DNA from: Neoconidiobolus thromboides FSU 785
Taxonomy: Eukaryota > Fungi > Entomophthoromycota
NCBI GenBank assembly: GCA_025603075.1
Contig: MU626471.1
Location: 1 to 32,376, forward strand
Reading direction: 5' to 3'
DNA: 32,376 bases
The notes below the pieces were generated by a model, which saw only the letters and a list, made by a program, of their open reading frames with translations, had not been told where the DNA came from and ran no database searches. Shown one piece after another: positions 21,412 to 26,900 of this stretch. Each line of letters opens with the position of its first letter. Positions within the stretch are counted from its first letter, which is position 1. Made by a program: the position numbers and the translations under genes.

Positions 21412-22144
21412 CTCGTAGTGAACTTTGTTATTCTTGTCATTTGATTTGGATTTTCCTATTTCATTCATAAAGTCAAAGTCATCACCAACTTCCTCTTCCT
21501 CCTCCTCTTCCTCTTCTTCGTCAGCGTATTCTGTTTCCTTAGCCTTACTTTTACTTTTATCTCCCTTATATAAAACATCAAAGATATTGGAACCTTCTTC
21601 TTCGTCCGCTCTTTGGTTATTATTCTCATAGTTATCTTCTTCACTATTATGTGCACTACCGAACAAGTCTTCTTCATCATAATCATCGAAGCTCTTTTTA
21701 TTAGAATATTCGTTTAAGAATCCGTCTTGCATTTCGGTATCTTCATCAAACCCTTGTTCTTTTAATTTTTCTCGTTTTTCTATATCATCTATCCAATCCC
21801 CATATACATCTACAGCTAAAGTTAACCCTAAGTAACCAATTAGCATCTATATTAAGGTTTAAAATTAGGTTAATTTAAACTTCTTACTAGATATCTTTGT
21901 CCTATAACCAGCAAAACATGAACGACAATAAATATGTCCTGTACCGGTAGCTTTATCACTAAATAAAATAATTTATTAGAAAATCACTCGTCTTTTTTAT
22001 AAATATTATTATAAGTTAACATGCTAAAACTTACGCTTTATAGTCAGTAGATTTTGATTCAGCACAATACGGACAATCGAAACTAGTTTCCAATTTTTCT
22101 TTCTTTTTTACTGGTGCTTTACGAGCACTCTTACGCTTACCCAT
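21160..22144 (-). CDS. ELF1: Transcription elongation factor 1 (ELF1/ELOF1) zinc-ribbon protein with a long acidic C-terminal tail, 3 exons
   Basis: MGKRKSARKAPVKKKEKLETSFDCPYC...(20 aa)...CRSC...KIS|RLTLAVDVYGDWID, followed by about 200 aa rich in D/E with poly-Glu runs. Confidence 0.92.
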
Positions 22145-22366
22145 AACAGTTGAATGTGTTTTTTAGAAGTTAAAAAACTAAAGATTATAAAATTAATGTT
22201 GATTTATCCCTTTTCTCAGATTAAAATATATCCTACTATTTAATTGGCTAAAACACAAGCTTGGAAAGTAACCAATTGAAGCTTAGAAATAGTTGAAAGC
22301 TGATTTTTTCGAGAGAGAGAAAATTAAAAGATTACCTTTACTTATCAAATTGAAATATAAGCCAAA

Positions 22367-22566
22367 ATGTTTTTCCAACCACAAGCACCTAAACTTACTG
22401 AAGAAGAATTAGCTATGTTAAGACAAAAAACTGTAGCTACTGCCACTACTTTTTTCACCCTTTCAGCTTTGTTTCAACTTAGTAAGTCATTTATCCTAGA
22501 ATTAATATGTGTTTTAATGTTTTTTTTATAGCTCCTTATGTATTAAAGGCTTTAAACCTTGCTTAG
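22367..22566 (+). CDS. TOM5: Mitochondrial import receptor small subunit Tom5 (49 aa), exons 22367-22481 and 22532-22566
   Basis: MFFQPQAPKLTEEELAMLRQKTVATATTFFTLSALFQL|TPYVLKALNLA*. This fits the fungal Tom5 pattern (MF..Q.P..S/T.EEL, C-terminal TM segment with L-S/T-P-aromatic). GTAAGT...TAG intron keeps the frame. Confidence 0.8.
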
Positions 22567-23037
22567 AAAATAGAAAATATATAAAGATTAAAATTATTTG
22601 CTTATATAGGCTTGTTGGTTTTTTATTTAGTTAAGAGAGATTTATAATAGTTTTTTATAGATTTTAAGTTTAAGATTGATTTAATAGTTATAACTAAATA
22701 TAAAATGGTTACTTTTTGGTTTTTGATTGTCTTTAACATTATCTACTCAGTTATTTGTTTAGATGCTTTTATTTGCATCCCTTTTTTTTAATTTAGTATG
22801 ATAGTTTATGTTTTAGATTTACCTAGTTAAAATCAATTGCTATTTTTATTCTATTAGTGTTGTAGATTATTATAAAAACTCTAGTAAATAGTAACTGTTA
22901 AGAAAAAAATCTTCTTACCATCTATTTTTTAAAATATAGTAAATCAAAAGATCTAATTATCGAATGTTATACAAAAAACTACAATTTTGATTCCCGTTCG
23001 CAAAAATATTGAAAAGTAACCACTTAAACCTTTTATT

Positions 23038-23713
23038 TTATTCTAAAATATCCAAATCGTATACCACAACTCTACCAAAAAAATCCGTTGATTTATCAAA
23101 TTGGATCTTCAATCTATCAAAGCCATCTTCAATGACCTTTCCTTTAAGTTTTATGCTATCGTCCATTTCAGCTATCTTTATCTCTGCCTGGTAAAAAATG
23201 AAAAAAGTTAAGGATAGTTAGTTAGCTATATATATTATTTTTTCTTTAAAAAAAGGATATCTGCTTAGCATTAATATCATCAAAATAAACCTTATTGATA
23301 TTAAAATACTCTCCTCCAAGCTTGGAGTTTTGTACCGACAGTTGACCTTCGCTACCTACAAAGCCACCTTGAAAGGTGATCTTTATCTCTTTAGCTTTTG
23401 TTAAACGACCAAAATCTAGAATTATACTTTGTGGTAAACCCTGAAATTGAGGAATATAAGTAAAGTTAGTAAATCGGGGTTATATTCGGAAACTCTAGAA
23501 TTAAATTTTGTGAAGACGCTATAAATATGTATTAACTTACACTATCACTATTCCAACAGGATTCAGTATCTTTATCGATTAAATTTTGTTTACCATATGT
23601 CTTGGTTTCTTTATTGAGGACGGAACTGACCCTAAGGAAGATGGTTAGGCTGATTGTATTGCAGAGCAAACAAGTTACTTGATTCGGGTGCTGGAAGTGA
23701 TAACGCTAGTCAT
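23038..23713 (-). CDS. NR2C2AP: Nuclear receptor 2C2-associated protein (NR2C2AP/TRA16) homolog, galactose-binding-like fold; exons 23679-23713, 23541-23631, 23261-23440, 23038-23190; about 152 aa
   Basis: MTSVITSSTRIK|VSSVLNKETKTYGKQNLIDKDTESCWNSDS|GLPQSIILDF...ITFQGGF...YFDDINAKQ|Q...DRLKIQFDKSTDFFGRVVVYDL matches the NR2C2AP motifs VSSVLN, CWNSD, FQGGF, STDFFGRV.VY. Exon lengths (35+91+180+153 nt) sum to a multiple of 3. Confidence 0.9.
23191..23260 (-). other. U12-type (minor spliceosome) AT-AC intron, 70 nt, phase 0
   Basis: Minus strand: exon ...AAGCAG|ATATCCTTTTTTT... (5' site at 23260), branch point TATCCTTAAC (TCCTTAAC = 23214-23207), then ...CATTTTTTAC|CAG (AC ends at 23191). Splicing restores the conserved C-terminus; read-through reaches TAA after four codons. 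Confidence 0.85.
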
Positions 23714-23943
23714 TTTTATTAAAGATAATGAAAATAGTAAAAAGTTAACAAAAAAATTGAATAAACGTGATTTAATTTCTATTCTTGTGAACTCAAAACA
23801 AAGAAAATTTATTAAACTACTTTTCTATTTTAATAATTAAACATAAATCATAACAATAAAACAACATAAAACTTTTGGTATTCCTAACTTACTTAAACTT
23901 CAATCTTTTATTACTAACTTTAAAAAATAAAAAACATAATACT

Positions 23944-26900
23944 TTAAACATAAACTAAACCTTGCATTGGAGGGATTGCACTAGCAAGCATACCACCACC
24001 AGCATTGATAGGGGGTTCTAAAGCGAATGCAGATAACCACACAACATAAGTCAATACCAAAACAGATCCTTTAAAATAATTGGATTTTCCTTCAATATAG
24101 ATATAAGTGATCAAAAACACGGATAACAATACTGAAAACATATCAAGTCGAGGGAAGATTAAGCTAATATAAAATGTCAATCTATAGCTATAGAGTATAC
24201 TATTATAATAAACTTACGTGAATGATTGTAAAGTAGGATCAATCTTATTGGACCAATGATAATAAGCTGAAAACGCTACTAAAGAAGGAATTTGGAGTAA
24301 AGCTACTTGAACAGTATAAGCAGAGCCGATCTCCATACTAAATATAGCGTAAATAAAAGCGTAGAAATATTACTAAATAAAGACTACCTTAAAGGAATAT
24401 TTCCATGTATAGCAAATGAAATAGCATTAACAAATTCAGTTACATTAGGTACCTAAAATTAATAATAAATAAAAGTGTCTCATTTTAAACATAATAAAAT
24501 AATTACCAAAGCAAAAATAGTTAATCCTAACATTTTCTCAGATATATTAACTCCTTCAATAACAGAGTCTACAGATCCAACCATGACTTCAGCAATAAGT
24601 GAGAACAATATAGTACATGAGCATAAAATCACTGCTGATTTTAATTTAGACCATTCAGGTGCATCATGACCACCAACCTCATCATCGTCTTCATCATCAT
24701 CTGAAAATATACCTGCATCTCTTGAATATGATTTGTTATTATTATGGGTCATATGAATAGCATCTACAATAGATTGATGCATAGCCAATGGAATAGTTTC
24801 TAGATTTTCAAATGCAGTAGTTTCAGGTCCAATTTTTGTAGTTGGGCTGTTTGATGAGCTAGGTTCTTCATCTGGTATAGGGTCAGTTTGAGTGTTACAT
24901 TCAACTACATTAACTGAGTGTAAAGTAGCATTATCACTATTTTGATTTGGTTCTACTTTTTTACTACTAAAATTTAATTGCTCTAAAATATGCCCAGGTA
25001 ATAACTTATTGTATATGCTTTGTAACATTTTAGATGGATTAGAAGGTGGTGCATAAATTAATTTAGTATGTGTTCTTAATGCAAACCATAATCCAATAAG
25101 ATAAGTTAAAGGTAGAATTATTGCGCAAATATACATTAAAGGTCTAGCATGGTCATAATAAAATTTAGATTCGGATGGATGAGGTTGATAATAAGCACAT
25201 GATTTGCAAGACCAATGATTGTTAGCATTAACAGGACAATCTGTACATCTTAATTCAAAATTAGCATAAATTGAATAAAATAAAGTGGGCGTAAATACAC
25301 CAATAAGGGACATAATTAACATAGTTGAAGTTACACCTGCACTTTTTGCATTAAATCTTTGCTGTTTCTTTTTTAAAGCACCACCAATCATTGAAAATCC
25401 AGGCATTAATAATAACCCAGCTAACATGGAACCAATGATAGAGCCTTCAACTAACTCTGCTTTATTTTCGGTCAGTGCTATGCAGTATAATATGATTTCA
25501 ACAATAGAACCAAAAGTGGCATTGATTACAGCGCCCATCCCCAAAGAAGACTGAGCAGAGATTGAAGATACTGCCATACCAATAAAATAAGCTAATGGCA
25601 CGGTTGAAGCTAAACAACCAGCAAATATAACAGATTGATCTGCGAGGGGATGCTTACCATGGGTCCAAGGGGCAAGAATATAAGCATCAGTCAATGTAAA
25701 GAATACCACCATCATAAGATTGATAAATAATATATTGATACCATCATGGGTATATTTATAATAGCCTAATCCAAAAGCATAGGTAGTACATAAAGAAGGA
25801 TGTGCATTTTCTTGATTTAACTTCAAATCACATGAACGATTGAATTTCAAGCTTAAGGGAATTCTACGTAACTTTTTGACCAAAACATAATTGAGTTTAG
25901 CCATTGGCACAGAGAATACCATTAACCAGCATAATAAAGATACAATTAACATTAAAGGGGCAACAATCGTATAATATATAGTGAAATAAAAGAATTTACC
26001 AGGAAAAAGACCTGATTTAGGGACGACTTGTCTAGGTGTACCACCTAATAAAGGTTCTTCATCACCTGAAACTTCAGCACGAGAGATTTCTTCTGGATTG
26101 ATTTTTTCTACGTATTTATTAAATGGCCAAAAAATATACCAAGCTAAGCCACTTAAAACTTTTGAGTATTCTAAACCACCAAAAGGAACTAAAAATAATA
26201 TCCACGATAATGTATAAAATACAATAGATAACCACCAACCGAATAATACTAGCCACACTAAATTACCAACAGAAAAATACAAAGCTTCAGTGGGTATTGA
26301 ATGTAAAGCTGAGCGTGCACTTCTTGTAATAGAACGTGATTTTTTATATAAAGCTGGCTTCCATAAAGGTAAACCAAATGGATGATATTCATTCAAAATC
26401 TCTTGTCTATCTTTGATAGTTTGTTCATGATCTGAATTTTCTACAAAATCGGTATCCATATTCAAATCAGTATCTGTGAAATCTAATTCTGGGCGATATT
26501 TCGATTGTCTAAGATAGGCAGATTTTCTTGTATTATTAAAGCTTACATTTCTTGATTTTGTTTTTGAGGCTCTCTTAGATTTTACTGTACTACTCTTTCT
26601 GGTTTCACTGTTGTCTTCTTCGCTACCATCTTGTTCCAAAGCTAGCTCTTCTTCTTCATCAATATCTGAGCCTAAATTTTTATTATTCATTTCGCGAATA
26701 CTTAGCTTGGAATCCCTACGCTTATTTAAGCTCATACGATGACGTAACTTACCATGGGATCCATAAGAATTATTTAGGTCCTTAGAAGTTGATTGAGCTT
26801 TTGAATTACGTTTACTCGTTGGATTGCTTCCTAATTCATTGTCGATTGTTTGTGTACTTGCTATACATGCATTGGAGTAAGTTGAATTAGCTCTACTTAT

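Follow-up and report, generated by a model that had tools for sequence, protein, structure and literature searches.

An AT-AC intron, very probably U12-type and inherited, is spliced from an NR2C2AP-family gene of the fungus Neoconidiobolus thromboides

Introduction

Which spliceosome removes the third intron of an NR2C2AP-family gene in Neoconidiobolus thromboides FSU 785, and is that intron new or inherited? The fungus belongs to Entomophthoromycota (Entomophthorales in the NCBI taxonomy; Entomophthoromycotina). The window, that is, the whole stretch of DNA analysed here, is 32,376 nt long and comprises an entire scaffold, which is AT-rich (~28% G+C). An earlier note on this DNA had proposed that positions 23191-23260 are a U12-type AT-AC intron. 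The analysis described here leads to the view that intron 3 is very probably a U12-type (minor-spliceosome) AT-AC intron, and an inherited one. This view is supported by the signals in its sequence, by an exact junction in RNA, by the join in the deposited gene model, and by conservation of the intron's position.

Structure and product of the gene

The NR2C2AP-family gene consists of four exons on the minus strand (23713..23038), on which all of the following features lie, and has a product of 152 amino acids. Exon 1 (23679..23713) starts with an ATG at 23713-23711 and contributes 11 codons and 2 nt, as read from the sequence. It matches the N-terminus of the deposited protein K502DRAFT_320238, and an RNA joint removes the adjoining 23678..23632. 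That segment is intron 1 (23632..23678), a U2-type GT-AG intron of 47 nt in phase 2, with the termini GTAACT..TTAG. Exon 2 (23541..23631), which ends ..VSSVLNKETKTYGKQNLIDKDTESCWNSDS, is followed by intron 2 (23441..23540), a U2-type GT-AG intron of 100 nt in phase 0, with the termini GTAAGT..TTTCAG and a TACTAAC-like branch site. Both of these introns are delimited by RNA joints in four runs. Exon 3 (23261..23440) holds 60 codons (GLPQSII...VYFDDINAKQ), and intron 3 (23191..23260), the AT-AC intron of 70 nt in phase 0, is delimited by an RNA joint between 23190 and 23261. Exon 4 (23038..23190) reads QAEIKIAEMDD...DRLKIQFDKSTDFFGRVVVYDLDILE, its translation ending ..STDFFGRVVVYDLDILE before a TAA at 23040-23038. 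Exons 2, 3, and 4 are each defined by translation and RNA contigs.

The deposited product of this gene, K502DRAFT_320238 (P0125), is 146 aa long and is flagged 'partial'. It reads ..DDINAKQQAEIKIAE.., so the AT-AC join is present in the deposited model, and it ends at ..GRVVVY. The earlier note had expected predictors centred on GT-AG introns to mis-annotate the gene; contrary to this expectation, the deposited model already holds the AT-AC join and is only 6 codons short at its 3' end. The open reading frame and the RNA contigs run on through those codons (DLDILE; 23038-23058, minus strand) to the TAA, and the Entomophthora orthologue has a similar C-terminal end, ..IYDLDIV. The ORF of the neighbouring Ca2+/H+ antiporter is 100% identical to K502DRAFT_295832.

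By sequence comparison, the product is a member of the NR2C2AP (TRA16) family: it is a single-domain protein in the range of ~140-150 aa, and its best matches are named NR2C2AP. The conserved blocks KVSSVLN, ETCWNSD, FQGGF, and STDFFGR stand out in the alignment. K502DRAFT_320238 and Entomophthora muscae P0121, the relative closest to it, together retrieved 307 relatives; many of these bear the name 'Nuclear receptor 2C2-associated protein', and the precomputed Pfam assignments are PF22633/PF00754. The family ranges over fungi, animals, Dictyostelium, Plasmodiophora, and Acrasis. Exon 3 alone, searched with HMMER against 1.84 billion representatives, gave four matches, one of which is E. muscae P0121. 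Pfam searches with the separate translations of three exons, pieces that are too short, gave no match.

Splicing signals of intron 3

On the minus strand, the sequence around intron 3 is ...GCT AAG CAG / ATATCCTTTT ... TATCCTTAAC TTTTTTCATTTTTTAC / CAG GCA GAG ..., where slashes mark the splice sites. The 5' splice site ATATCCTTT (23252..23260, minus strand) is U12-type and fits /[AG]TATCCTT, and a U12-type branch-point sequence, TCCTTAAC, lies at 23207..23214 on the same strand. Two candidate branch adenosines, 23209/23208, are placed by consensus at 18/17 nt from the last intron base, and it is from this consensus that one of them would be taken as the branch nucleotide within TCCTTAAC. The intron thus has both the 5' splice site and a branch motif that falls within the ~10-20 nt from the 3' splice site expected of U12-type introns. 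Its 3' terminal AC is at 23191..23192 (minus strand), as fixed by the RNA junction (both=0 in four runs). A point against this assignment is that phase 0, the phase of intron 3, is the rarest among minor introns.

Taken singly, these motifs are no rarer than chance: RTATCCTT has four matches in the window against 3.85 expected, and TCCTTAAC has two against 1.42 expected. The combination of donor, branch site, and A[CG] occurs once in the window, compared with 0.09 times per first-order Markov shuffle of it. The other RTATCCTT sites (2151, 4411, 5256, minus strand) are put down to chance, their upstream frame being closed and a branch motif absent. On their own, the signals of intron 3 are suggestive, and it is RNA that decides.

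Other splice sites lie close by. An AG at 23189-23188, just past the terminal AC, creates a 73-nt AT-AG option, which is in frame, as is the 70-nt AT-AC option. A GT at 23290, upstream and in frame, would as a donor delete VYFDDINAKQ.

It is very unlikely that the major (U2-type) spliceosome excises intron 3, although it does so for a few AT-AC introns. Terminal dinucleotides alone do not fix the type of spliceosome, and AT-AC termini are what intron 3 has in common with U2-type AT-AC introns. In addition, the 16 nt from the branch site to the 3' end are T-rich, and a search with Rfam at gathering thresholds over the whole 32-kb window found no snRNA, minor or otherwise, nor any other family. 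However, U2-type AT-AC introns have major-type donor and branch signals, with a donor that is ATAAGT-like and not ATATCCTT, whereas intron 3 carries a U12 donor together with a correctly spaced U12 branch motif. The six U2-type introns in the same 3-kb stretch also have different signals, namely GTAAGT/GTAA.. and ..YAG, and the orthologous introns of human and mouse have been classed as minor (PMC6717393).

RNA evidence for splicing

Splicing was followed across positions 22000-25000 in RNA contigs from four public runs, which come from three studies and carry three organism labels (X1, label A; X3 and X2, label B; X6, label C). The run type, 'RNA?', is guessed; the contigs are nevertheless taken to come from RNA because six GT-AG introns are spliced in them and because X1 has zero depth over intergenic parts, as it does over intron 2. 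These six introns, two of which belong to the NR2C2AP gene, all lie within the 3-kb stretch and are spliced in the same contigs as intron 3.

In X1, X3, X2, and X6 alike, a joint between 23190 and 23261 removes exactly 70 nt with no ambiguity in its placement (both=0). The ends of the removed segment are GT..AT on the plus strand, that is, AT..AC on the strand of the gene, and AT-AC termini are accordingly those used in RNA in all four runs. The intron that the earlier note had proposed is thus borne out, its signals to the base and its joint in four runs: the RNA junction that it had suggested looking for was found in contigs, and its branch motif at about 17 nt from the intron end agrees with adenosines at 17-18 nt. 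Its point that a GT donor at 23290 would delete VYFDDINAKQ also holds in the sequence. The AT-AG alternative that it raised is indeed in frame; its use in RNA found no support, since no such joint occurs in the four runs.

Since all four runs join 23261 to 23190 exactly, the AT-AC sites are chosen over both the AT-AG option and the upstream GT donor. There is a slighter chance still than that of U2-type removal that splicing proceeds mainly through one of those two in-frame alternatives, with the AT-AC form as a minor product. Contigs made by an assembler may hide rare isoforms, such as one in which the AG 3 nt downstream is used at a low level. Against this, only the 70-nt joint appears among the contigs of the four runs, with no joint at 23187/23261 (73 nt, AT-AG) or at 23290, and the deposited model K502DRAFT_320238 agrees with the 70-nt joint.

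Intron 3 is also present in unspliced form. Contigs retaining it reach a depth of 506 in X1, compared with 430 for spliced contigs, and 18 compared with 59 in X6, although contig depth is a poor measure of isoform amounts and contigs drop rare isoforms. In X1, introns 1 and 2 have no unspliced contig. Minor introns are known to be removed slowly, and this pattern is in keeping with that. That the segment is in fact retained, with the protein ending at a TAA and the junction arising through reverse-transcriptase template switching or faulty assembly, accords with these unspliced contigs but has a negligible probability, as the junction lacks microhomology (both=0) and is identical in four runs from three studies, the conserved C-terminus arises by splicing only, and orthologues have the same intron.

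The source of X6 is a relative with 95-99% identity. All the differences in its intron 3, six substitutions and an insertion of 2 nt, fall within 23225-23247, between donor and branch site, while the donor ATATCCTTT, the branch site TCCTTAAC, and the 3' end are unchanged.

Several further observations were made on the same contigs. A 691-nt X1 contig (22482-23190) spans exon 4 of the NR2C2AP gene, its 3' flank, and a gene on the plus strand, including the GT-AG intron of that gene (22482-22531); it represents either transcripts that converge and overlap at their 3' ends or a join made by the assembler. In the Ca2+/H+ antiporter gene (24162-24221, minus strand), an X6 joint removes 58 nt with four other letters, AGTA, in between, while the other runs have a GT-AG intron of 54 nt at this place; the discrepancy resembles an indel or a splice-site difference between strains. 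An X2 contig that is unspliced over intron 2 (23411-23564) shows 15 differences in 154 nt and occurs beside contigs identical to the window, which marks it as a diverged second haplotype or strain in that sample.

Orthologous introns

The age of intron 3 can be judged from the genes of 11 orthologues, for which each protein was mapped exactly onto its DNA; the 12 proteins were then aligned and their introns marked. Intron 3 falls in phase 0 at column 126, where it follows the conserved Gln of 'D.N..Q'. The position of intron 1 (column 24) is common to nine of the 12 proteins, and that of intron 2 (column 55) is widely common.

In N. thromboides, column 126 holds an intron of the form ATATCCTTTT..AC (70 nt). 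In E. muscae, an intron at this column again has the form ATATCCTTTT..AC, is 80 nt long, and is annotated as AT-AC. The sea anemone Actinia tenebrosa has there a 290-nt U12-type GT-AG intron (GTATCCTTGA..TTCACTTAAC, 12 nt, AG). In Capitella teleta, the intron at this column and phase is U2-like (GTATAAAC.., 59 nt; L004:2230-2288), and is a candidate for minor-to-major intron conversion.

In three further species, the orthologous intron appears to be mis-annotated. For the teleost Lepidogalaxias salamandroides (CM110868.1), the DNA at column 126 reads CAG/ATATCCTTTG..TCTTAAC..CCCAC. Its annotation relies on an implausible AT..AG pair with a 2-nt shift that gives Ile (L003:1721-2006); with an AT-AC reading (ATATCCTTTG..TCTTAAC, 12 nt, AC), the residue would be Ser, in agreement with the Q/SF seen elsewhere. 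For Syncephalis pseudoplumigaleata (KZ989401.1), the DNA reads CAA/ATATCCTTTG..TCCTTAAC..GAAC (82 nt; L007:963-1044). The deposited protein reads through this donor as ISFGQRAMMNE, and a 49-nt GT-AG piece is removed instead; AT-AC splicing would give ..EDINALQ/SFQLPP.., in frame. For Ambispora leptoticha (CAJVPS010000316.1), a donor ATATCCTTTT directly follows ..EDVNTMQ, and the DNA reads CAG/ATATCCTTTT..AAAC, for which an in-frame intron of 96 nt is proposed (L005:1016-1111). In the annotated model, the donor is instead a GT lying 15 nt upstream, paired with an AG farther downstream, so that VNTMQ and SFPIFTK are lost. The proposed Ambispora intron has a weak branch motif, TTTTTAAC, which lies 23 nt before the intron end. 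In all three species, re-splicing as AT-AC would be in frame and would restore the 'Q/SF' junction. The mis-annotation foreseen in the earlier note, while it does not apply to the N. thromboides record, apparently does apply to the Syncephalis, Ambispora, and fish orthologues.

There is no intron at column 126 in Absidia, Gryganskiella, Allomyces, or Coprinopsis, and in the intron-less Absidia and Gryganskiella the 'Q/SF' sequence runs uninterrupted across this column. Plasmodiophora has a U2-type intron in another phase, three alignment columns upstream. A U12-type intron of the same position and phase is thus found in Neoconidiobolus, Entomophthora, and Actinia and, once the DNA is re-read, probably also in the teleost, Syncephalis, and Ambispora. 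U12-type introns occupy this position in vertebrate and cnidarian NR2C2AP genes and in those of other early-diverging fungi, and the comparison indicates that intron 3 is ancient, having been inherited and not newly gained. The U12 intron in animal NR2C2AP for which the earlier note had proposed a search does exist: it is listed for human and mouse in the minor-intron database MIDB, and fish and sea anemone have it at the same column.

Proposed mechanism and significance

The signals of intron 3, the class of its orthologues, and the fact that it is spliced at all point to the minor spliceosome as the catalyst of its removal. Splicing also suggests, as the earlier note had proposed, that the N. 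thromboides genome encodes U11/U12/U4atac/U6atac and the minor-spliceosome proteins. U11 snRNA pairs with U12-type donors and is later replaced by U6atac. On this model, U11 would recognise ATATCCTTT at the 5' splice site, and U12 snRNA would pair with TCCTTAAC, leaving the branch adenosine bulged at 17-18 nt from the 3' end. U4atac/U6atac.U5 would then take the place of U11, and two transesterifications would join 23261 to 23190. Excision links ..AKQ to QAEIK.. and so yields the 152-aa protein with its conserved C-terminal strands. Were intron 3 to be retained, translation would stop after four extra codons (..AKQISFF*), and the last 50 residues would be missing.

Poor removal of this intron might be a means of controlling NR2C2AP output that has been conserved from fungi through to mammals. 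The idea is raised by the unspliced depth in X1, which is similar to the spliced depth, by the lack of unspliced contigs for introns 1 and 2, and by the mouse retention index (MSI) of 0.26-0.50, yet it is doubtful. If it were true, retention would produce a protein without its last 50 residues, or a target of nonsense-mediated decay.

At this locus, RNA shows directly that a textbook AT-AC intron is spliced in an entomophthoralean fungus. One particular minor intron has probably stayed in place and remained of the same type ever since animals and fungi shared an ancestor; from those fungal lineages that are devoid of minor introns, it has disappeared completely. The apparent mis-annotation of the orthologous intron in Syncephalis, Ambispora, and the teleost, and so in no fewer than three public genomes, suggests that GT-AG-centred pipelines corrupt such genes. 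Nonetheless, intron 3 is a clean but ordinary example, and it leaves current understanding unchanged because minor splicing has already been documented in Zoopagomycota, as has the minor intron of NR2C2AP. The deposited gene model had already captured it; it is an example and not a discovery.

Comparison with known minor introns

In the literature searched, no paper was found that ties Conidiobolus to U12 or the minor spliceosome. Neoconidiobolus and Conidiobolus are not named in the main text and one supplement of a survey of fungal minor introns (PMC10639083), nor in a 2022 preprint on minor snRNAs (bioRxiv 10.1101/2022.10.12.511939). For NR2C2AP in connection with U12 or minor introns, main texts held nothing relevant, and the entry is in supplementary tables only.

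Those tables give a human NR2C2AP minor intron of 289 nt (chr19:19202042-19202330) and a mouse Nr2c2ap minor intron of 442 nt (MIDB, Olthof et al. 2019, PMC6717393, Table S1). In both species the 5' site is CAG/ATATCCTGC, and the branch sites are ATTTCCTTGACT in mouse and TTTCCCTTGACT in human (PMC6717393, Table S2). The mouse intron belongs to a set of minor introns that nearly all tissues retain, with an MSI of 0.26-0.50 across them (PMC6717393, Table S5). Intron 3 of N. thromboides lies in the same gene family and is of the same AT-AC subtype. Its donor follows a CAG (Gln) codon, as theirs does (CAG/ATATCCTTT in N. thromboides and CAG/ATATCC.. in human and mouse), and the teleost intron occupies the same alignment column and phase. 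From that shared donor context and the fish orthologue, the human intron presumably has the same position as that of N. thromboides. Both appear prone to retention, given the mouse MSI of 0.26-0.50 and the unspliced contigs that rival spliced ones in one N. thromboides run. However, the introns differ in host, a fungus compared with human and mouse, in size (70 nt in N. thromboides, 289 in human, and 442 in mouse), and in branch motif (TCCTTAAC in N. thromboides, TTCCTTGAC in mouse, and TCCCTTGAC in human).

Among fungi, no minor introns have been reported in Ascomycota and Basidiomycota (PMC10639083). Rhizophagus irregularis has 205 minor introns together with four minor snRNAs (Larue and Roy 2023, PMC10639083), and Basidiobolus meristosporus, a member of Zoopagomycota, has 249 minor introns (PMC10639083). 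Minor snRNAs have also been detected in mucoromycote and zoopagomycote lineages (bioRxiv 10.1101/2022.10.12.511939). Like the minor introns of these early-diverging fungi, intron 3 belongs to a lineage outside Dikarya, and it shares with them a 5' splice site and branch consensus resembling those of animals and plants, as well as conservation with animals of some intron positions (PMC10639083).
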